Below, in pieces: positions 2,922-55,983 of a stretch of DNA of 55,983 nt. Every line of letters begins with the position of its first letter. Within the stretch, counting starts at the first letter, position 1. Below the pieces are notes generated by a model. It was not told the DNA's origin. It saw only the letters and a program-made list of their open reading frames with translations, and did not search any database. Origin of the DNA: Dimorphilus gyrociliatus (lineage: Eukaryota > Animalia > Annelida); contig CAJFCJ010000072.1 in NCBI GenBank assembly GCA_904063045.1, positions 13,517 through 69,499 on the forward strand, read 5' to 3'. A program made the position numbers and the translations under genes.

Positions 2922-5402
2922 AAGTTGGGGTGCGAACATACCCAGGTACATTTACACCCTATTTTTGGACTTGTTTTTTTATTGAATTTTTGAATAAATG
3001 ATTTGGCTCTTAATCTATAAGTATGTATCTAAAAAGATTAAATATTATATTAATGAACAATAAAGATTGACAAATGATATTTATGCTGGAGAGTAGATAT
3101 GGGATGTTTGCATTAATAAATCAATTGATGTCAATTTGTTCAACCTGAAATCATCCCACAAATCAAAATTTTCTTTTGGATGTCAATGTACATTTTCTTT
3201 TATTGTTTGTAAGTACTTTCCTCTGACAGTAATTTCTCATAATTGCAATCAATTAAGACTCTTCTTTTAGCTCATCAACCAGCATGTAAAAATACCCCTT
3301 AGCAGGTAGCTTACTGTTCATTCTTTGATATACTTCATAAACATTATTGGTCCTTATAGACAAACCAAAAACTGACCAATTATTTGGTTTCCATAATTTA
3401 TTTTTGATCCAGTTTGTTTGGAAGTATTGCAGCTGGTCCAAAAATATATTTTTTTCAAAAAGTTCTGCATTTATACTGTTAAATGTTGGTTCAATAATAT
3501 GTGCTGGCAATTACATGGCCAAGAGCCTATTGAATCATATAAGTTATTCAATACCTAAAGTTCTATATATTTGAATGTAACTGACTTATATTTTCCTATA
3601 CACTGCTTGTGTGAAATGAAATACACAACCTTGAAATTCAGTGAGGGGATATACTTTTGATAATGCTTTCCATAGTCCTTTTTCAAAATCCATTGTAATT
3701 CTATTTGGGTGAAAATCATTGATAAGATTCTTCATATGATACAAAGAAGCAACTTTACTTATCATCACTTTTGAACAGATAATATGAAATATTGACAAGT
3801 TGATAAAATGGTTCTTTTACAATCTTGAAACTACCATCATAGTACCAACAGTTGGATTTTGATAATAAATTCAGCTGATGGTTTGTTGCAAAGATTAAAA
3901 TTCTTTCTCCATTTTCACAAATATCTTTCAGCAAAAATTCATCAGCCAAAAATGTTTCATCTAAATTGAAATTATACACTTTAGGTTCCACTGGCCTAAA
4001 CTTTTGTCTATTTGAGGTTGCCATTCTCTTTAAGTAGTTGATATCAGGAAGACAAGTAGTATTGGTTTCATAAAATAGAAGAACTTTTTCAGCAATGCTT
4101 CTTCCAGATGTTTGATTATCACTTCTGCAAACAATTTTCAAATCTGTTTTCACTTTAAAATCCACTTCTAAATTCTTTTTTCTGTTGTGATTATGTTCCA
4201 AATTGCCTTTGAGAAATAAATTTCCATTTTGTCTTATTCTGGCCACACATCTTTTCTTCTTACTTCTCACACTGCACACCCAAATAGTACTTGATAGTGT
4301 TTTATGTTTAACAAGAAAAGAATATGCATCATTCAGTAAAATGTCATGTCCCTTTCTACTTCCTCCTTTTACAATCTCAAAATCATTTTTTGTGGATGAT
4401 TCACAATATTCTTCAGCATTCTCCTCAACTTCCTCCAAAGAGTCTAGGTCCATTGATTGGCATTCTGAAAGAACATGATTTTCATCCTCCAATATTGATT
4501 CTTTAATTGCAGCAGTCCCATTTCTTTCATCAATTAAGCTTTCTTCAGAATTTACTTTGAATTTCCAGATTGGTTAACTTCTTCAGCATGACAGTACATT
4601 TTCTTTTGTTACAAGGTTTGCAAATTGGTATGTTAGCTGTTTCTATATGAATGTGTTAAAAAATATAATTACATGAAAGCTGATTAAAGAGTTACATACC
4701 TGTGCATTTCCTATGAATAAGGTTCTTACAAAGGCTGCATTTCAAATATTTTTACCTTTCATAAATTGTTGAATGACAATAATGACATTTGACAGCCATT
4801 TTATAATATCCAATCAAATGTAGATAGTTATCTAACAAAATTTCCAGTTATCAATAAATCTCCTTTCCAAATATTCAAAATGGCTGAAATTTTATTTATG
4901 CAATATATTGACCTTATTCACAATTGAAGATAATACATTATATCAAAATATCATGTATCAACAATCTCAATGATAGGATATAGATACTTACTTCTGTTAA
5001 ATCTTCCAAGAAGCACTTTGTTCAAATTTATTCAGGAAATATAACTTTACCTTTGCAAGCATAAATATTCCAAGTGAAAGTTTATTTAATAAAACTACCA
5101 CTATTAAAATGGCTGCTATTTCACTTTCAACAACATTTTCTTTTAAAGTAGTAATTAATATTGTTGGGATATGTATTCTATTTAATATCTGCATTCTATC
5201 TAATCAATATATTAACAAATATATCATGAAGGAAAAGAAGGAAAACAGGATGTCAATGTACATGTTTATTCAAAAATTCAAAAATAAAATAAATAGAAAA
5301 ATAGCATCCAAACAATCCTCAGTAGGTTCACACCCTGGTACTTTCCTACCTGACCCCATAAAATAAATAAAAAATAGGGCGTGAACATACCCAGGTAACC
5401 CC
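2922..5402 (-). mobile_element. Mutator-like (MULE/Phantom-type) element, near full length, defective; PHD-FLYWCH-MULE transposase
   Basis: FLYWCH (IWVCSVRSKKKRCVAR...HNH), WYYDGSFKIV, MDFEKGLW..GCVFHFTQAVYRK and RTNN motifs in 3253-4492. PHD exon MAVKCHYC..CSLC..HRKC at 4799-4700. Termini aagttggggtgcgaacatacc / gtgaacatacccaggtaacccc. Flanks gaaatattc (2913-2921) and aaaatattc (5403-5411) give an 8/9 TSD match. Confidence 0.9.
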
Positions 5403-8095: not shown

Positions 8096-11000
8096 TTAGC
8101 ATAAAAACGTCTTTCGTTTTTGGAGAATTTTTCTTAATATAACACCAAAATCATAAATATCTTGTTGTTCACTTTTTGATGTTTTTACACAAAGATCTTT
8201 AGCAGAAAGGAAGTATATATCATTGATTTTCTAAACCAAAGAAAACCAATAAGGTTTTATTAATACAACTACAATGTTCTTACCTCATAAACTATTGAAT
8301 TTATATTAAAAGAATATTTCAATGATAATTCTTTTTCATGAAGATACTTTATAGCCGAAATAATTTTTAAACTACATTTCAAATATTTGAAATTCTCATA
8401 GAACTCTTTACAAAAAATTGCTTCACTATTATTCTTCAGTTTCTCTTCATAATTAATATACAGAAAGTGTTTTTCACCACTTTTTACAAGATCTAATACT
8501 TTTAAATTTTAAATTTTAAAAATTCAAAGAATTTGACCAAAAAAAGAATAAAGAAAATTGGATTATATTTACAATTGTTACACCACATTTCACCAATGGT
8601 TCTCTTCCATTTAAGCTTATCATTTAGAATTTTATCTTTCTTCCTTTGATTTAACAAGATTATTTCATCAATTGAAAAAATTACCAAGTTTAATAGCACT
8701 TTTAAATATATAAATGTAGGAATTATTGCATCAACATCAGGTTTTTTCTCAAATACTTTAAAAATCATAAGAGGGCCTATTGAAAGATAAAAAAAAAACA
8801 GAAGAGTGTATTACGTAATGTGAAAGAAAACAAAACACCATAGTCAAAACCTAATATAGCTAAAGGAATTGATGTTAAGACATTAACAAGAATGATTGTA
8901 CAGACTTTTGAATATAGTTTAAACAATTTGATATTCATTTTTGTGTCACTACTAGTTTCTCTTGATGAATATTTTACATAGAAAGCAATTTTAATGTACA
9001 AAAATGTAATTAGTATAGTTATTGTTGGATTAAAAATGCAATAATGAAAATAATCAGTGTGAATAATGTGAATGGTCTTTAAAGCATGAATTAATTGAAT
9101 AAAATTCTCAATTCTAAAGAGACTATTTTGAATTGAGAGATATTTCAAATTGTTTAAAGAATTTATTGATATTGAATTTGAAATTGATTTTACACTGCAA
9201 TTGTTAATTTTTAATATTTTTAAATATTTTATATTTTTAAAAATCATAAATGAAAATTGGTTAAAAAAAATATCCGACATTTTGACAATTGGTATTGAAA
9301 TTACCAATTGTATAATTCGGTAATTGGCAATTTAATTCATCACTTCCCTGTATACAATTGATTTCTCCATTGCAAAGATTTTCAAGTTTAATATAAATTG
9401 TTTCATTCCAACATTTAAAATAACCTTTTGGTATAAAATTATCTGAAGAATGTATTAGGAACAAAATTTTTCATGGTTCTTATTGAGTACAGTTCATTTC
9501 CTACCACACTCAGTTTCATCATCTCCTAGGTAACATTGATGAATACCATCACAAATTTGTTCAATTGATATGCAAAAATCTTTTGAATGGCATAAATATT
9601 CACCAAAATTACATTTTGTTCTTACACATTTCCTATCTGGTTCATATAGATTTGTTATTGAAATCCCCATTGAGCTTACTCTATAGAAGCATTCAGTTAA
9701 ATTGTTTGTATCATATCTATATATTTCATATTCTACATCACAATCTATTTTTCCATCATTCATCAAGAAATTTGGAACACACTGCTCATTACATTTAAAT
9801 TGGGTGTTTTTGTTGCAATCTGAATGAAAAATATTTGATAGAGAATGATTAAATTGAAAATAGTTTATTGACTGATAATTTTTCAGTTATACCTTCTTTG
9901 AAATTGTTTGAAATTGAATTGACATTGTTACAAATTTCATCACTTGCATCCAAACAATTTCTCTCATTATTGCAAACATATTCTTCAGGAATACATTCAT
10001 TATTATGGCATGTCCTAAAATTAGAATAATGATTGTTTGCTCATTTATTAAACTGGGTGTATATGATAGAAATCTATAGTGACCCAATTAGATTATTTAT
10101 ATTCTTACCTTTGTCCAATTCTGCATTTAACATATTCTGAAAAAGAAAAGGAAAAAAACTAAATGAAATTTATCTGTTTTTTTTTTGGCCTAATCCAGTC
10201 TGCCCCAGATTTTAGTGCTACCCCTAAATCTTTACTAGAAAAAGTTCTATTAATAGTACCACCACATTCTAATTCGTCAGATTTGTCATGACAATCAAAT
10301 TTGAAATTACAAACTTTTACTAATGAAATATTTTGCTTTGATGTTAAACATTGAAAAAAATTGATTGAATTATTTCCTTCTTTTTGCTGTTCATCTTCAT
10401 TTGAAAAACAATCATTGTTTCCATCAGATACATAAATTATGTTTATGTATATTTCATATTTTGAACAATAGAATGCATTTGGATGTATAATTGTATGTTT
10501 TGTTGATGTAAACTGGTTAATATATGTAAGTTCCTTTTTAAATGCTACATTTGTATTCAATATTTAGAGGAATTTAAATAGAATATTCCATATTTTGTTT
10601 TTACTTAAAGTCTTTTGGCAAGTTATAAATTTTTGCCACTTCCCTATACAGCTTTTCTTTGAATATAAAACATCTAAATATTGTGTGAAGTATATTTCTT
10701 TTATCTATTGGCAAATTGCCAATAAATATCAATAAAATATTTTTGATATAGAGATATTTACTGAAAGTTGAATTTTAAACAAAATACTTTCACAATTTAA
10801 CCTAAAGATTTCAGAATTTTTTGAAAATTTTCCATTTATATTTTCAATACTCATTCTATGCTAAAAAAAAGACAAAAGAGTGAATCACTAATTGGAAAGT
10901 GGTGAAACTCTTTCCCAATTAGTACTTTATTATAAAATGGAGGAATACTAATTGTTCTGCCACCTGTTGTCACAAAAATAATTTGATTTCTCGTATACTC

Positions 11001-16450: not shown

Positions 16451-18093
16451 TTTGTCACGTGACTTATAATTGATGATCTATGTATATTCTAGAAGAGTAA
16501 AAATGATAGAATTAAAATATATAGATATAGCATTAAATCATTCAAGAAAGCATTGTATGTAATAATAGCCATCTTAATTAATTGAAAAAACTTGAACGTT
16601 CAAAATTAATTCAATTACTATAAATAAAAATAGTTTTGTAATGAAAACCTTAAACTTGATATATGATTTCGCAATATTTTTGAAACGACGATAGGCCTAT
16701 GCAAAAATAAAAACATTAAACAATACTTAAGATTATAGATTTGTATTATAAACAAAAGAAAGTCTATTATAAAATTTCTTCCCATCATGAAAAAAATCTG
16801 CAAATTTTGTGATTTTATCATACAATATCCAATAAAACTTAAATCGAAATTATCCAAAGAGGGAGGATTAATTTTTTCTAGTCACATCTTTGGTGTTATT
16901 ACTCAATGATGACTCTAGTAAACATAATGCCTATTGTTCAACAATCTGCCAACATTTCATATTACAAACCACTGAAAATGGCTGCCCTATACATAAATAT
17001 GATAAAGAGGTTTGTTTGTTTGTCATATTTAAAATTTTTCAAATATAGAAAGCATGAATAATGCCATATTTTAAAAAATTGTGATTTTGGTGATGATAAA
17101 TTCAAAAATAGCGAAATTTCTGGCAAGGAACATTTTATAAGAGAATTCAATGCGGAGAAAACGCCGAGACACGCTTCGACTGTCAGGCTATCAATGAGTT
17201 AAATAGTTGTAGTATATCAAAATGTTTGCTTATTTGCCTCTTATAGGAAGAATATACAACTAACTATGGAGGCTAAAACGTTTTTTTACATTTGTTTGTA
17301 CCAGTTTTTATTTTTATAACTATTCACGCCTTTTCTACATATAGAGAGTGTAAATACAAAATATGTGATAGTGAAAAAATTTGTTTTGATGAAAGTGATG
17401 AAATTTGTCTTCAAAGGGACAGGCGAGTGGGATAGTAGGAGATTTTAATCCTAATCCAAATCTAATAGGATTTGATAAGACTTATCTTTTGGTTTTTTGG
17501 AATTTTTGGTGTATTTGAAAATCTCTTGTTATTTCTTGTAAGTGTTGACGCATTGTTTGTTTTTACACTCTCTATATGTATATATATAGCAACATTTTCA
17601 CTGGTATGATCATCTGTTTGTACTCTACTTATAACCTTGGAGAGACACCAAGCCGTTGTTTATCCATTGAACAAATCAATTTTTCAAAATACGTCACAAA
17701 TCTATCCAATCTATTCTTCTCTAAAAATGAAATAATAAAAACTGTTAAGAGTGTGACAACTGCAAAAATGATGACTCATTCGCGTAATTTTTCATTCAAT
17801 GGACAATTTTCAAAAAATTCCCTTTTTATGCAAGTAATATAATGAATATTTGCTACTATAAATCTATAAAACCCTCCTTTGTATTTCTTTACAAGCTTCC
17901 TATACAGAAATATATTTTAAACATTGGCGAAATTTATGATAAAACGGAACTCAATGAAAAAATGGACATCTCTTCATTAGGTACATTTGTAAAGAAGCTA
18001 CTGCAAAGGAGACATCAAACATTAGGCCTATTCAATACATTAATTAAATTATTAAGCATTTCCGTGCTTGTACATTGATTTCTTAACTTTTTC

Positions 18094-19286
18094 TTATCTT
18101 CTTCTTTGGCATGTTTCCAGTCCATCTTCTCTTTTATGGGAATGGGGTTTTTTTCCAGGATAGAATTGATCTTCCAATTGATTGACACTTGCTGGGCATT
18201 TGTTGTTCTTATTCCTTACACTACATGTCCAAAATGTTTTTGTTGACCTTTTCATCTTTATTGTAAACATATAACCATCATAGGCCAATAGGTCTTTACC
18301 TTTTTTACTCATTCCTTTCAGAATTTTGAAAGTTGGCTCCATATCTACTCTTTTTGATGTTGGAGAATTTATGAAAGAAGTTTCCATCAAATTATTTGAA
18401 TCCTGTGAATGATTTTCTGTTGTGATTTCAATGTTACACCCAATCATTAGATCTGTGCTGTTGTTTTCAACAATAACATCATTATCATCAACATCTGTTC
18501 TCATATTTCTATCACTTTCTTTTTCATTTTCATAAATATCTGGACCATTACCAACAACATCATTCATAGTATTTTGAACTTCATATGTCATCTCTACTTC
18601 CTTTTCCACTTCAGAGTTCACTGTTTTGATTTGACTAGTAGACAGCTGTTGTAAGGTGACCAAACATGTTCTCTTAGAAATATCTTCACAAATATTGCAA
18701 AGAAAGAGATGATTTTCTGTTAATACAATCATTTAAAAAAATTATATATGCTATAAAATTGAATTTAACCTACTTTTCATGCATTTCTTGTGAATTATTA
18801 CCCAATGGTGACATAGTTGACACTTTGCTTTATGCTGTCTTCCAACCATTTTCTCCTTACAATTGTAGCAATATGCCATTATCTATCAGTAAAAAGAGAG
18901 AGTTACCCCAAAATCGCTGCTCAAATATTTTAAAAGAGATTTTACTAATTAAAGTTTTACCTTAAACTGATTCAATTTAAAAGAATTATCAAGAGATATT
19001 CTGGTGTATTGAATTTTTTTGATATTGTGTTGTACTTGTGTAATATCCTTTTCAGATAATATTTGAATCAAACTCTCCTTTGTATGGAACAAAAACAGGA
19101 AATCATAAACAGGAAATAGTTCCTCAACAAAATGGAGAACCTGACATTGCATAATTTTTATTATCACTACAATGTACATACATTATTAATTTTAATTTCC
19201 ATGGCCATTTTCCCCTATAGACTTTTTCCACTGTGGACATTTCTCCTGTGGATATTTTCTCTTGTGGACGTTTTCTCCATAAACCG
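18094..19286 (-). mobile_element. 5' half of a MULE/Phantom element (PHD + acidic linker + FLYWCH), 3'-truncated
   Basis: FLYWCH GKDLLAYDGYMFT..FWTCSVRNKNNKCPAS..PHSH in ORF 18094-18732. PHD exon MAYCYNCKEK..CQLC..HKKC at ~18870-18770. Subterminal tandem repeats (ggagaaaacgtccaca-like) at 19200-19286. Confidence 0.82.
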
Positions 19287-31099: not shown

Positions 31100-34000
31100 G
31101 TACTCAGGTATGGTTTCACTCCTAGTCTTTATTGAATAGGGGTGAAACCATACCTGGGTGAAACCATATCTGAGTGAAATCATACCCATGGCAGGTGAAA
31201 CCATACCCATAAGAAACTTAGTTGTCTTATATTATTAAATAATAATAGTTAAACCAAAAACAATAAAAAGATTGTTAGAAAATAAAAATACAGACATTTT
31301 AAAATTGAAGAAGAAAATTAAGAAAATTATGTATTAAGATTTTCATTATGCATGTTATCTTCCATTGGAAAATATTGAATTTATTTGATAAAGAATGTTC
31401 AGCCATTTTGAATAAATGCTAATTATAATTGTTTGTTAGATAGCATTATTTATAGTGAATATTTTCAGTCATTATTGAAATATGGCAGTTAAATGTAAAA
31501 ATTGCAAGCTTGTTGTACATGGAAGACAGAAGAGAAAATCCTGTGTGCTATGCAATGAAATTATTCATCAGAAATGCATCATAAGTATCATTATATAATC
31601 CATATGATTATTATAATTATTCAGCTATTTCATTCATATTCTAAGGTGTCTGTTTGTCTGGATTGTGAAAAGGGAAAGTGCCTCCTTCAGACCATCAGAC
31701 CTGAAGGCATAGAAACTGGTGATGTGGATGGAAAACTGAAAAATTCAATTAAACATGAACATCAAAATGCAGAAAGTCTAATTGAGTTGAATGATAGTCT
31801 TTCAAATGAACCAGAGTTTGATGATGATGGAAATTATGATAGCTGCAACATGAATGAAAAAGAAATGGAAGAACATATAAATGAGGATGTCATACATGTA
31901 AATCTGAATGAACATGCAAATGTGAATGACAACTTTCAAGCAATTAAAGGTGGAATTCAGTTGGGAAAAGACATTCTAATCAATGACAGATTTTCATTTA
32001 CATTGAAAGCTAAAACTTCTAAAAGCAACATTTGGGTTTGTAGTAAAAGGACCAAAAAACAACTGCAAGAATACACCAGCAGGGGAAAATATTTATAAAG
32101 GAAAAGTTAGAACACATTCATGGTAAAAATGATGAATATGGTAGAAAACAGCCAGGATTGAAAACAGCCAGAGGCTTGATTGAAAATGGCCAGAGGTTTG
32201 ATTGAAAACGGCCAAAGACTTATTTGTATAAAGAAAATGATAAGTATGATATAGATGTTAAACAAATATTGGAAACTTGAAATGATAATAATAGTCAGAA
32301 GTGATTTATTTACTAAAACAACATGAAAAGCACCATACTAAAAATAAAGCACTAAAAGTAACTACTTGGACTAAAAGAATAACATGCATCTAATGTGAAA
32401 AATATATTTTAGAACATTTTTCTAAAATCTCAGCAGCTGTTATTTCACCATTTTTAAATTTCTCCCAAGTTTCAAATATTTCCTTTTGTATGTTTAAATA
32501 GATTTTTTTCTGTAACCTCTTTAATTTCTTTTCTGAAAGCATTTGTTGATAAATTGGAATGAGATCAGCCTCTCTTTTTAGTTCATCTATCAGATTGTAG
32601 AAAGATTTAGAATTGCCAACATTTATATTTAGCCTATTGTGGAATCCCTCAACATCATTATTTATCCTGATTGGAGATTCATAGGCTGACCAAGAAGAGG
32701 GTGTCCACATGCTATCTTCAATCCAAGTATCCTCAATATAAGTTATTAGGTCCTGCAACTTCTCAGTTGCTTTCAAATGTTGTTTTATCTAAAAAAATTC
32801 ATTTGAAATAACATCAGCAGGTAGGAATGGTAAAGCCAATAGCTTTTGCATTTCAATCCATTGCCCAAAGTGGTTTTTATATTCACCAGAATAACCCAAT
32901 TCATATGAAAACAAAAAGAAAATTAGTTTTAAAGAAAATATTCAACACAAAATGAATTTGTACTTGAATCTTTCTGAAAACTGCCTGAGTCCAATGAAAT
33001 AAACAGCCTTTTACTTCAGAATCTCGAAAATGCTTTGTAAATTCTTTCAAATGGCTCTTTCAAAATCTACCAATACTTTCTTTGGTGATTTTTCAGCAAT
33101 CAATTTTTTATAGCCTGCAGAAATATTTGTAGACTTTGGTAAAAATATTAATAATATACCTTAAATAAAAGGGGATAACAGATTTTCTTTTTTGATGATG
33201 TCATTGCAAAAAGAAGAGGAACTTATTTCAAAACACCATCTCTTTTTAGAAATGAGTGAATGGAAAACAGCTGTTTGAATGGAGGATTTACAACTTTAAA
33301 AGTTCCATCTAAAAACCACATCTTAGAAGAAGCCAGAAGTTGAAGTTGGTGATCAGTTGCAAAAATTATTATTCTTTCATCTTTTTTGTGAATATCCTCT
33401 CTGAAAAATCCATTTGGAATAAATGTAAAATTGATCAGAAAAGCTATTGATTCAGATTCCTTTGGCCTGTTTTTTCTCCTTTGATAGTTAACAATTGCTT
33501 TTGATGTTGACATCTTTGGAAAATTGGACACATTTTCATTTTCCAGGTAAGAATCTTCAACTATTCTTTTGCTGCTGACATTTAAATCTTTATTTGCTCT
33601 TTCTCTTATTTTAATGTTCATTTCTATGATCTTTTCCAAATTTGCTGTTGAAGGATGAATGTGCTGCTTAGAGCCAATTTGACAATTACCTTTATATTCA
33701 TTTATGCTTGCAGGACATTTTTTGTTTTGATTTCTCACACTGCATCTCCATATTCTAAAGTGTTCTCCATGTCCTTTTATAGTATATGAATAACCATTAT
33801 GAACCATTAATGGTTTTCCTTTTTGGCTCCCATTCTTTGAAAATTCCAAATGCTCATCTAAGTTAGCCTCATCCATTATGTCTTCAAAAGAGCTTTCTAT
33901 TTGATTTTGGGCATCAACTACATTAATATTATCTTCTTGTATGATTTCAGTTGTCATGCACTCTTCTTCATGATCAACTTCCATGATATTTTTGTTCTCT

Positions 34001-35340
34001 GGAGCAGTATGCAGGGCCTCACAATAACTTGTTAGCAATTCTCCTTCCAATTGAAATGTGGTAACAACAGCTTCTGTCATGCTATTCTCTTCCATTATTT
34101 CATCAGGAGTTGAAGCTTGGCTGTCCACTTCCATTGGATTGTTACCTTCAGTTTCTGATTGTTGAAGAAGTATGGAAATGTTATCATATTTGTTCAAAAT
34201 TACTTTTAATTGGCATTTGTTGATTGTTGTACACATTGAGCAAAAACCATCTAAAACAATAACTTTAAAACTTAATCAAAAATAATAATGAAGTGTTACC
34301 TTTTAGACATTTCAAATGAAATTTTTTCTGGCTTAGAGTGCATATGGATCCATAATTTCTATATATTTTCTTTTGGCAACAAAAGCAACAAGGAGCCATT
34401 TCAAAAGTGCTCTCATAAAACAAAACCCCTTTCTATGAAAAAGCAATCCAAAATTTTCTGAAAAAAAACTGAAAACAAGGATAAAGAAAGATGTTTGTAA
34501 TTGTAACATAAATCACACAGTAATTGTGCTATAATACATGTTTAAATTATCAAATTTATGAATATTACCTAATGGTTTCAAAGAGAAAGTTTCAAAATCA
34601 GTGAAATATACACTATCCAAAAAAAGAAACTGATAAATTTATTTACTACTGATATTATCACTCAAACCCATAAAAAATCATTTAAATCATGCAATCATAA
34701 ATATGTTAATTATTTAATAATATTATTATGTTTATCATTTTCTATATACAAATAAGTCTTTGGCCATTTTCAATCAAGCCAATGGCCGTTTTCAATCCTG
34801 GCCATTTTCTACCAGTCCCAAAATGACCATCTAACCAGACATCAGAATTAGAAAAGATTTGAAAGAAATGTGTAAAAGTGACACAAGTTCAAGTGGAAAG
34901 AGATTAGCTGAAACAATTCTGTTAAAGCACAGCAATCATACAGATTCTGTGCCAAATGTTGATTATCTGAAAAGAGTTGCTAATTTCACAAGGCAAAAAC
35001 TAAGGCCCAAAGAACAAAAGAAGTGGACTTTGATTAAAATAAAGATTCCAGATGATTTTTTGCAAGTTGATGTCTATGAAAATACAGAAAAAATTCTTAT
35101 TTTAGCTAGCAGCCACAAAATTAATTTGCTTGGTAAATCAAATCACTGGTTTATTGATGGAACATTCAAGATTGTGAAGGCTCCATTTTATCAGCTCTTA
35201 TCTATACACAGCTATGTAAAATAAGATGGAGAAATGAAACATGCTCCCATAGCATTTATCTATATGACATCAAAAAAAAGAAAAAGCTATAAAAAGGCAT
35301 TTAAGGTATAATTATGAGCAACTTATTTTCAACTTTTCAA
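31100..35340 (+). mobile_element. MULE (PHD-FLYWCH-transposase) split by a nested MULE; 3'-truncated
   Basis: ggtgaaaccatacc terminal repeats at 31105-31210. PHD MAVKCKNC..CVLC..HQKC at ~31481. FLYWCH at 31950-32133. Coding resumes at ~34828 (DLKEMCKSD..WFIDGTFKIVK), collinear with the 3755-4492 transposase. Confidence 0.85.
32134..34819 (-). mobile_element. Nested near-full-length MULE with ~110-bp TIRs; defective
   Basis: Long TIRs built of ttgaaaa(c/t)ggcca units at 32134-32250 and 34735-34819. TSD aaaatgat / aaaatgac. PHD exon at ~34399, FLYWCH and WFLDGTFKVV in 33223-34236, DFERAI..GCLFHWTQA, and RINNDVEGFHNRLN in 32390-32776. Confidence 0.92.
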
Positions 35341-39321: not shown

Positions 39322-40849
39322 TTCAAAAACATTAGTTCAAAAACACAGACACAGACACCAGACACACACGTATATATACGTAATTTAGAAAGTCCTGAAT
39401 AATCAAGAAATACGATAGTAAACTTTTTTAATCAGTAAGATAAGAAAAAGATAGGACATATCAACATATTTTCTAGCTGACTGTTTCAATTTTTAAATAA
39501 AACAAAACTGGAAAAATCACTTTAAAAATAGCTGATACAAATTTAACAAAATATCGAATTAGAAATATCCTAAAAACAAAAGGTCAGCAGGTTTATTAAT
39601 GAAGACAAGTTTTCTATGTGATGGGGATTAGATTGAGAAAATTATTGATAAATGAAGAAAATATCTTCAAATTGATAATTTTGCCTTTTCTTTTTACAAA
39701 AAGAACTCGACGGTAGGTGGAGAAATTTTATTGGCGAAAGGATAATGTGACAAATTAGGAGATTTAGAAATAGATAGTCTGGTCCATGCTGTTAAAAACA
39801 AGATAGGCCTATACATATTTATGCATTAATCATTGGTCCAGATCAATGTTCTCAAAGAAGTGTTTGATAGCCTTAACAAAGTATGGATATCTCTAAAATA
39901 CAATATAATAGCTGTAATCTAAGTCTCAATGAGACAAATTACTAATTAACTAATTCTAATTAACAAACACTACTCTGAGTCTTTAGGTCTGCATGTTTTA
40001 CTACATATGTCAATTATCGCCAAATCATCCAACTCAAGCCAATCTCCACAGTACAGTAACATTTATTTAAAATATGGACCATCCAATAAAACTTTTATGG
40101 ATAGATCAATAAAAATCAGTATAGATAAGCATTTAGTCATCTTACTAAAACAATTTTTGATTGCATAACTATTTAAACTGATTACGCAATCGACAAAAAT
40201 CAATACCAAAATCATATATTTCTGTAGTATTTAAATGAGAATTGTTATTTTTATTATCAAATACCAATGAACTTTGAATAGTTTTGTTTGGCAATTGTTG
40301 ACAAATACAATTTGATGTGTCAAAACCGCAAACTTTTAGCTTTATGTGTTTTCTTCCATTTCACTGACTTTACTTTAAAAAAACACCGTTTCTCTATTTT
40401 TTAGACAAATTTCTACATGGAGATAAAGGTGTTAGAGAACTTTTGTAAAACCATTAAACACTTGACAATCTTCAACAATGTGATAAAGATAATCATAATT
40501 GAAACATTTACAAACATGAACAGAATGTCATAGACATTCCCACAACTCTTAAATTTAATTGAATATTTTTGTTTATCTACTGAAGAGGTAAATACTACTC
40601 ATCTTAATAATAAAGATGCCTTTAAAATGTCTTGACTACATTCATCAGCTGAAAAGCAATTTTTAATAAAAAAGCAATAGTCAATAGTACAACTCAAAAC
40701 ACATTTCAACAAGTTGAGTTGAAGTTATCCCACAAGCTTTGAAGTTTTCCCATATAGACAATAGCTCTTTTTGAATTCTTGTGTAGGTTTTTTTTCTTGA
40801 TTCTCAATATTTTCCTCTCATTTAATAGTTTCTGATACACAGAAATTAA

Positions 40850-54475: not shown

Positions 54476-55250
54476 TCAATGTGGACTAAACCCAAATAGT
54501 TCTGACTTGGCCATTCTAAGCTTCTTGTTAGGTGGTGATGATGTGTGTTTATAAGTCAAAGAAGACCTTTTAGATTGTGGATCATAGAGGTGTACCCATG
54601 TTTCATCTCCAGTCACAATTTTTTCTAAAAAGTCTCTTCCTTCTGCTGTGTATCTTTCAAGTAGCTCCATACAATGACTCACCCTCACCTGCTTCTGAAC
54701 CAGATTGAGAGCATAAGGAATCCATTTTGCATAGATCTTTCTGTATCCTAGCTCCTTTATAATTTTCCCTACAGTCTGTTGACAAATGTCTATTTGTTGG
54801 GCGATTGCTCTCTGAGAAATGGTCCAATCTTCTCTGATAAGCCTGTCAATTTCTTCTCTATTCTGACCTGTTACAGCTGTGCTTGGATGACCAGATCTTG
54901 CCAAATCTTCAAAATTTTTCCTTCCTTTTTTTATGTCAGATACCCACCTCCTTATTGAGCTTTCACTCAGAGTTTCATCCCCGCAAAAGCTTTTTAACAG
55001 CTTATAAATTTGTCTCGCAGACACCTTCTCATGCACTAAAAATGCTATGATTGGTCATTGATCGGAACATATGCACATGACTTGCAGTTGCTTATACCAA
55101 AATAAATTTGTAATACCTCAACAGAATCAAATGAAAGTTTGCACAGTGAAAGTTTACTAATTTCCTAAGATTATTGGAAAGTATCAATGATATTAGTTAA
55201 GCCATTTTAAAATTACAGCACAGTGATTGAAACTTTTTATTTGTACCTAA
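54476..55250 (-). mobile_element. Mariner (DD34D-type) transposon, 5' half
   Basis: HTH SIRRWV..F..ED..RSGHP, KWIPY.L and IVTGDETWVHLYDP. TIR-like ttaggtacaaataaaaagtttcaatcactg next to TA at 55251-55252. The N-terminal DQ*PIIAFL carries a probable CGA>TGA stop. Truncated at the 3' end. Confidence 0.9.
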
Positions 55251-55347
55251 TAGATAGCGGACCATATAACCCTAATTTTTCATAAAATAGACATGTTTAC
55301 AATAAAAAGAACTTTGTTTATTCTAAAGAATTGTCAATAGCATAAAA

Positions 55348-55983
55348 TTAATAATTTTTCCAATGTAATTGCTTTTGTAATAAAGTTCTTAATGACAAAG
55401 AAGCTTTTAAAATATCCTCACTACAATGATCATTTGAATGGTAATTTGCTCTTGAAAAAGAAACAAAATATTTTCCATCTATATTGTAAATATTTTTTAA
55501 ATCAATTCCATCATTTAGGGAAAACATATAGCTATGACAAAAGTCAATTGCTATGAATATTTTCATTGTTAAATTGTAAATTTCATTTGCTGTCATTTTC
55601 TTATTAAAATTAACAACACAATCCTTCTCTTTTCGAACATTTTCCAAAGCAATGTGTTTTGAAGCAGCTCCTTGATAGAATTCAATCCCTGACAACAAAA
55701 GTATGTATGCAGTTGAAGGAAAAATATTAATTATACAAAAAACATTTCTAACATTTTCTTCCCATTTCATTTTCAAAAAATTTTTTCTTTGCTTCACTGA
55801 AATGAGATGACAAAATATAAAATGAGAAAGATATGATGGAAATCATATACTTGCCCCCGCTTTTTAAGCAGTAATCTAAATTGCAGGGAAGTATACAAAA
55901 ATGGATTTAAAACTGAATTGATTGGCAAGCAGACTGTTATAATCCAAGCATAAACATCATTTGAAATATTTATTTTTCTTATA
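55348..55983 (-). CDS. 3' end of a GRL101/LGR-type GPCR (TM7) followed by a kinase-like (pseudokinase) exon; gene extends beyond the window
   Basis: 55982-55851 translates ISNDVYAWIITVCLPINSVLNPFLYT (LGR TM7). An intron-like 55850-55797 segment follows, then ORF ..KIFIAIDFCHSYMFSLNDGIDLKNIY..SEDILKASLSLRTLLQK, homologous to 8096-8620. Confidence 0.78.

Follow-up and report, generated by a model that had tools for sequence, protein, structure and literature searches.

Does a GPCR (G-protein-coupled receptor) gene in the annelid Dimorphilus gyrociliatus end in a piece of protein kinase? The question is raised by one end of a 55,983-nucleotide stretch of DNA (GenBank assembly GCA_904063045.1, contig CAJFCJ010000072.1, positions 13,517 to 69,499; hereafter the window), where the seventh transmembrane helix (TM7) of a receptor is followed, after a short gap, by an open reading frame (ORF) with kinase-like motifs, here called the tail ORF. 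Two single-exon proteins encoded in the window stand in the public protein collection and assign it to this contig and assembly, which is that of D. gyrociliatus (PMC10212961). The original prediction, made from the letters alone, read the receptor end and the tail ORF as a receptor of the GRL101 or leucine-rich-repeat-containing GPCR (LGR) type fused to a C-terminal pseudokinase. Our analysis favours a narrower answer, to which we give a probability of about 0.6: the locus would hold the 3' end of a GPCR gene of the GRL101/relaxin-receptor type, with a kinase-derived tail, the link between receptor and tail being doubtful at this particular copy.

Under this interpretation, the last exon or exons would encode a family-specific cytoplasmic tail of 131-149 amino acids (aa) situated below helix 8. 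The tail would descend from the middle of a kinase domain: beta5/alphaD-alphaE and alphaF would remain, with the catalytic and DFG region between them wrecked, and the tail would have neither ATP-binding strands nor catalytic residues, its activation segment being shortened. Because those strands and residues are missing, we expect that it cannot phosphorylate; if made at all, it could act only as a small docking or scaffold module on helix 8. For most of its history the tail would have been translated as part of a receptor, with the frame kept through a long divergence between paralogs. At this locus, the strong splice acceptor would end the protein at KKRGQ-stop and leave the tail in the 3' untranslated region (UTR), and it would be retained only through a weak AAG acceptor that lies 5 nt beyond.

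Receptor end and tail family

The minus-strand exon at the window edge reads IRKINISNDVYAWIITVCLPINSVLNPFLYTSLQFRLLLKKRGQ, which contains a TM7 with the NPxxY motif (as NPFLY) and then helix 8. Its top match in the PDB is relaxin receptor 1 (RXFP1, 7tmw_R residues 653-682; E=0.0024), aligned at TM7, and for the rest the PDB search gave unrelated class A receptors with E>1. The LGR-type TM7 signature LPINSxLNPxLYT, with NPxxY, is present. TM7 is the sole visible helix of the seven-transmembrane (7TM) domain, as a 2044-N assembly gap (window 55984-58027; L001 1796-3839, where L001 is a retrieved locus reaching 3.8 kb beyond the window end) truncates the exon on its 5' side. The leucine-rich repeat (LRR) part and TM1-6 would fall inside this gap. 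The strand that carries TM7 also holds, upstream of the gap, at least four LDLa modules in three frames (Pfam Ldl_recept_a); that they belong to the same gene as TM7 is something we infer, because the N gap separates the two. As far as it is visible, the layout fits an LGR/relaxin-receptor (GRL101) type, and the sequence supports the receptor assignment made in the original prediction.

Several features interrupt the LDLa region. Long (TA)n/(CA)n and (GA)n microsatellites occur among the LDLa exons at L001 300-370 and 1130-1200, and a transposase C-terminal fragment lies among them at L001 631-822. The introns between these exons are far above the median intron length of D. gyrociliatus, which is 66 bp (PMC7854359).

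The TM7, the gap, the ORF and the strings originally quoted from it (KIFIAIDFCHS, LNDGIDLKNIY and EDILK..LRTLL) are all present on the minus strand, with the ORF running one base out of phase with the TM7 frame. Stop-to-stop frames of at least 164 codons are rare by chance, with 0.01 expected per shuffled window, and the tail ORF thus is coding sequence, or was very recently. It has 89 one-step paths to a stop codon, and a frame evolving neutrally would stay free of stops with a probability of 0.05 once 0.1 substitutions per site had accumulated. That the frame is open despite only ~22-25% identity to its paralog argues that the tail was selected as coding for most of its history. Exact look-ups of the tail ORF and of one neighbouring ORF found no protein on record, and searches for homologous proteins with the tail, with the TM7 region in the N-gap frame and with a 74-aa exon of the paralog returned no proteins.

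The comparator for the tail lies in the same window, after the TM7 of a neighbouring paralog, where removal of two canonical introns (8493-8572, 80 nt; 8231-8283, 53 nt) unites three frame pieces. The similarity of the two tails holds over three gene models. Compared with the unspliced paralog pieces, the tail gives a Smith-Waterman score of 87 (z 7.2; 0 of 2000 shuffles); with the paralog alone spliced, z is 4.8 (4 of 3000 shuffles); and with both spliced, the score is 80 (z 6.3; 0 of 5000 shuffles) with three small gaps. The alignment is colinear from the K-x-K-W motif through LQK(Q/R), which agrees with the end-to-end alignment to 8096-8620 claimed at the outset. When the paralog tail is compared with 472 six-frame segments of the window, the tail ORF ranks first after self-matches (score 69), and second comes a relic on the plus strand at ~17.1-18.1 kb (score 64). 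When the exon pieces of the paralog were aligned to the whole tail with MAFFT, the results were unstable and were kept out of the AlphaFold input described below.

Two relics extend the family. The first, of 61 nt, matches the alphaF-coding part of the ORF and sits within transposase-like sequence. The second comprises LDLa-like, TM1-like and ERH (TM3-like) pieces followed by two frame pieces colinear with the tail, and ranks third in the window by score against the kinase model introduced in the next section. These sequences support placing the tail in a family of post-TM7 tails that is repeated, with two loci and two relics in this window.

The paralog itself seems to depart from a regular receptor. 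On the minus strand, 8777-9307 and 8505-8777 seem to encode three LRRs and a hinge that runs straight into a segment resembling TM5, intracellular loop 3 and TM6, then a TM7 without NPxxY. The membrane domain of the paralog seems either strongly reduced or part of a decaying gene.

Probable kinase descent of the tail

Statistical evidence for kinase descent comes from the paralog tail and from a profile of both tails. We built a custom kinase hidden Markov model (HMM) of 291 positions from 63 domains, cut from 80 viral contigs with an HRDLKPEN-coding pattern, and compared each tail with 1000 composition-preserving shuffles of itself. The paralog tail scores 14.5 bits against this model; its shuffles have a mean of 0.55 and a maximum of 9.0, and none of the 1000 reaches 14.5. 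The match consists of two colinear pieces, one over HMM 82-129 (beta5-alphaE, ending with YLHEKG one residue before HRD) and one over HMM 189-212 (alphaF, DIYSLGYILYELL versus DIYDFGVILRKIL). Across the 472 window segments, the two exons of the paralog rank first and second (E=0.011 and 0.013), and the next segment follows at 0.25. A comparison by hhalign of the two-tail profile with a kinase profile scores 25.0, falling on alphaE; shuffling the columns gives 11.5 +/- 2.0, and none of 120 such shuffles attains 25.0.

Weaker signals point the same way. Searched against the PDB, the last exon of the paralog finds kinases of the TKL group alone, TAK1 (MAP3K7) and Pto, both at alphaF (SEKCDVFSWGIILWEVI versus SEQQDIYDFGVILRKIL) and at a sub-threshold E of ~1.1. 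Pkinase clusters make up most of the 100 nearest ESM neighbours of the 74-aa paralog exon, a kind of pattern that, as the tool cautions, can also arise by chance. At the level of sequence, the statistics thus show kinase descent of the family tail in two cases, the paralog (8099-8505) and the two-tail profile.

For the studied tail, kinase descent follows by homology: since kinases are matched both by its homologue in the paralog and by the joint profile, we infer that it too is kinase-derived. The kinase alphaE-like motif occupies ORF residues 65-89 and the alphaF-like motif residues 125-143, and the tail aligns with the same alphaE columns as its relatives (NKKMTANEIYNLTMKIFIAIDFCHS versus HMM 103-127).

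Direct tests of the studied tail weigh against this interpretation. Its score against the custom HMM is 1.5 bits (p=0.23) for the full 149 aa and 3.2 bits (p=0.09) for the spliced form, and hhalign against the kinase profile gives p ~0.10. Pfam returned no kinase family at E<=10, a phmmer search of the PDB found nothing relevant, and a PDB search with two small stable tail alignments found no match. Against 1.84e9 representative proteins, phmmer gave no genuine match; the sole one listed, a 3437-aa bacterial repeat protein, was rejected as spurious, since its 12 matches run through repeats of the GKYFVDG..FNPADYTVGNH type. In favour of descent, the ESM-feature neighbours of the studied tail are families with a kinase fold, YukC/EssB, DUF6382, Kdo, APH, RIO1 and PK_Tyr_Ser-Thr (top score 0.95); against it, the tool flagged the top named family as probably wrong. 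A kinase-profile comparison of this tail, which the original prediction had put forward as its check, therefore gave no significant match in Pfam, the custom HMM or the PDB. The proposed register (alphaE, degenerate catalytic region, alphaF) draws support from the paralog and the two-tail profile, but no significant support from the studied tail alone (p=0.09-0.23).

What has been preserved is also far from a whole domain. The tail measures 131-149 aa against ~250-300 aa for a complete bilobal kinase domain, and the paralog matches cover just HMM positions 82-129 and 189-212 of 291. Unlike TKL kinases, the studied tail has in its translation no Gly-loop, no beta3 lysine (VAIK), no HRD, DFG or APE and no alphaG-alphaI, so the stated lack of HRD and DFG was correct; its catalytic region reads LNDGIDLKNIY and its DFG position SFS. 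The interval between alphaE and alphaF is ~26 residues shorter in the tails than in a kinase, and nothing lies beyond alphaF. Because these motifs and the flanking parts are missing, we regard the tail as a kinase fragment of about half a domain and not as a pseudokinase, a label that overstated what a 131-149 aa piece without Gly-loop, activation segment and alphaG-alphaI can be. By its composition of motifs, the tail is unable to bind ATP in the usual way.

The junction and its competing explanations

The frame offset between TM7 and the tail is real in the DNA. A contig from the probable source run matches the junction exactly, and a contig from an independent 2024 sample spans 55197-55919 with zero inserted or deleted letters. 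Over 55040-55983, the 2024 sample differs by C>T and G>A only, along whole contigs, and thus looks bisulfite-converted; we used it for checks of insertions and deletions (indels) and not of polymorphism. With no indel in either data set, a homopolymer assembly error is not supported as the cause of the offset, and neither is the 1-nt correction that had been proposed to remove it.

We enumerated all GT/GC-AG pairs that would join TM7 to the ORF stop-free. The candidate 54-nt intron between the two has a length compatible with the species median; an origin of this unit as a repeat or insertion was rejected, as no second copy exists within the window. When the CAA/GT donor is paired with the strong acceptor TTTCAG (55797), TGA follows immediately and the receptor ends as KKRGQ-stop, just as the original prediction had cautioned. 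Intron retention terminates at the same TGA (55794-55796). Only two in-frame joins preserve the conserved K-x-K-W start of the tail. One pairs CAA/GT with an AAG acceptor (59-nt GT-AG intron, exon from 55791), which is one of the two remedies that the original prediction had named, and the other, a variant, pairs a GG/GCAAGT donor with an AAAG acceptor (68-nt GC-AG intron, exon from 55786). The AAG join restores the spacing from helix 8 to K-x-K-W that is found in the paralog, where 8505-8777 is intronless at this point. A third in-frame option, using a GTGAAG donor from the stop and a 50-nt purine-rich intron, would remove K-x-K-W and was judged unlikely.

These junctions bear on an explanation that we consider nearly an even bet, namely that the receptor gene now stops at KKRGQ, or has become a pseudogene altogether, the ORF being left in the 3' UTR as a young relic. 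Termination at TGA under both the best splice and intron retention suits it well, as does a frame offset confirmed by two data sets, and so does the drift of the studied tail, but not of the paralog, past direct kinase detection. Surroundings rich in transposons and family relics favour decay and to that extent count against our interpretation; two further decayed copies lie in the window, and transposon insertions and microsatellites occur in the upstream LDLa part. Public annotation, moreover, holds no gene model over window 49823-59822, a point that also speaks against an active receptor gene, although the absence may stem solely from the N gap. The open frame limits this explanation, because a neutral frame in 30% GC DNA soon gains stops (P=0.05 at d=0.1), and any disconnection must therefore be recent.

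Another reading is a gene that still works, in which the AAG acceptor (55791) or the GC-AG splice is used and the receptor bears a dead kinase remnant as a scaffold; in a variant of this, the CAG acceptor 5 nt upstream might yield a tail-less isoform. We hold this tentatively and would sooner bet against it than for it. It accounts for an ORF that is intact despite its 89 one-step stop paths, for the match of the AAG join to the spacing in the intronless paralog, and for an AATAAA 28 nt past the ORF stop. It has to contend with the absent gene model, with searches for sequencing runs that listed none of RNA, and with an in-frame splice that needs a poor AAG acceptor 5 nt past a textbook TTTCAG with a pyrimidine tract, which tells against any reading in which the tail is joined to the receptor. 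The GPCR-kinase fusion originally proposed therefore stands in part: the receptor type, the tail family and the continuity of the paralog tail with TM7 are in its favour, but the fusion is unproven at this locus, where the best splice gives a stop.

We think it unlikely that the tail is instead a lineage-specific domain unrelated to kinases, perhaps with an eighth membrane helix at residues 20-38. The non-significance of every direct kinase test of the studied tail is what such a domain would produce, and composition and short motifs (LH, DI..L..LL) could account for the kinase likeness. Structure prediction gives this view some room and yielded no confident kinase fold. AlphaFold run without an alignment produced low-confidence models, with a predicted local distance difference test (pLDDT) value of 36 for the ORF and 47 for its last 112 residues. 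Searched with Foldseek, the pLDDT-47 model found mostly kinases among its best 50 matches, but at E 0.13-0.35, over ~56 columns and in the register of the kinase N-lobe (for example CaMKII 40-90), unlike the register of the sequence comparison. In VIA-align, ferredoxin/ACT-like folds came out on top with Z<=5.3, a level that the tool's own note classes as noise.

The hydrophobicity of residues 20-38 is considerable (Kyte-Doolittle 19-residue mean 1.83, above the 1.42 of TM7). However, the stretch is encoded exactly by a canonical 48-nt GT..CAG unit; once this is excised, the remainder aligns almost without gaps to the spliced tail of the paralog, and the paralog carries a comparable phase-1 intron at 8493-8572. 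Because T-rich introns translate to F, I and L, we read the stretch as a probable in-frame intron rather than an eighth membrane helix. Further arguments against a domain unrelated to kinases are that the joint profile and the paralog tail match kinases significantly and colinearly, and that the studied tail occupies the same alphaE columns.

That the ORF is a small gene of its own, bearing no relation to the receptor transcript and starting for instance at the ATG found 9 codons into it (55768-55770), is hardly credible given that the homologous sequence of the paralog is continuous with TM7 in one frame, that no such protein is on record and that the receptor exon is just 54 nt away.

Known receptors and the surroundings of the locus

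The preferred reading, a GRL101/relaxin-receptor-type gene with a kinase-derived tail, resembles two known systems and differs from both. With GRL101 and other type C LGRs (RXFP1/2, arthropod LGR5), the locus shares LDLa modules upstream and the LPINSxLNPxLYT TM7. No kinase-like tail is reported for the type C LGRs described, whereas here an extra exon of 131-149 aa would follow helix 8; a paper on GRL101 does not mention a kinase-like tail (PMC8286064). Literature searches for GRL101 with pseudokinase, or for LGR with LDLa and pseudokinase, gave nothing relevant, and we found no publication describing this kind of receptor tail.

Fusions of GPCRs to kinases, which likewise place kinase-derived sequence on the cytoplasmic side of a 7TM domain, are known elsewhere. 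GPCR-TKL/K fusions occur in oomycetes, amoebozoans and acanthoecid choanoflagellates, and GPCR-TK fusions in choanoflagellates and sponges; in a 2025 survey, neither class was found in metazoans other than sponges (PMC12716839). The known fusions, GPCR-PIPK included, carry complete, Pfam-detectable kinases on unrelated 7TM families. Here, in contrast, a dead kinase fragment that Pfam does not detect would follow an LGR-type 7TM, and the join is a candidate one.

If a relaxin-receptor-type family does carry a dead kinase fragment, the bilaterian LGR lineage once had a fusion of this kind, and if the tail is real, these orphan receptors may possess a second interface that is independent of G proteins. 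A bolder scenario, which we rate as a long shot, would derive bilaterian GRL101 receptors from an ancient fusion of an LGR with a TKL/TK-like kinase, with the Dimorphilus remnant serving in docking and the choice between CAG and AAG acceptors toggling the tail. If true, this ancient fusion and splice switch would connect two arms, GPCR and kinase, of peptide signalling of the insulin/relaxin type. Veenstra reportedly proposed GRL101 as an IGF receptor while treating the GPCR and kinase arms as separate receptors. The studied locus is a far-diverged and possibly decaying family member, and on its own it is no proof of fusion. Together with its relatives, it shows turnover of the receptor-tail family inside a single small region of the genome. 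The features discussed are collected in Table 1.

Table 1. Positions of the receptor end, the tail ORF, the candidate splice units and the related copies, in window coordinates except where L001 is given; a slash marks a splice boundary.
Feature	Position	Strand	Basis
7TM exon end: TM7 LPINSVLNPFLYT and helix 8 SLQFRLLLKKRGQ	55851-55982	-	translation, PDB match
Candidate 54-nt intron, CAA/GTATAT...TCATTTCAG/, with pyrimidine-rich tract	55797-55850	-	sequence; splice use predicted
Junction zone: TGA 55794-55796 in TM7 frame, weak AAG acceptors	55786-55796	-	enumeration of splice pairs
Tail ORF, 149 codons (164 stop to stop)	55348-55797	-	ORF, paralog homology
Candidate in-frame intron, 48 nt, phase 1, T/GTATAA...TTGTCAG/GG	55689-55736	-	predicted from splice model
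AATAAA, 28 nt past ORF stop codon	55317-55322	-	sequence; weak evidence in a 30% GC genome
Post-TM7 tail of neighbouring paralog (comparator), 140-aa frame	8099-8651	-	two canonical introns removed
Third-copy relic, 61 nt, ECSQDILKASLLLR then stop	40602-40662	-	77% DNA identity to 55387-55447
Fourth-copy relic, decayed, ..MDISSLGTFVKKLLQRR	17112-18075	+	Smith-Waterman 64 to paralog tail
LDLa frames	L001 2-463, 1052-1450, 1414-1617	same as TM7	Pfam E=3.4e-11, 1.7e-6, 3.6e-8

Transposon sequence lies close to the tail and elsewhere in the window. An N-terminal transposase ORF of mariner/Tc1 type (54476-55036, minus strand; HTH_32, HTH_Tnp_Tc3_2 and HTH_48) is found ~300 nt downstream of the tail ORF. 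Between the two, 55072-55250 (~180 nt) has a contig depth in the thousands, and we thus regard it as a high-copy repeat, probably the end of this element. Further away, the ORFs at 3755-4492, 18094-18732, 31574-32098, 33223-34236 and 34859-35224 encode a FLYWCH-like zinc-finger motif and then a MULE-type transposase, a shared arrangement suggesting that the window holds a DNA-transposon family in repeated copies.

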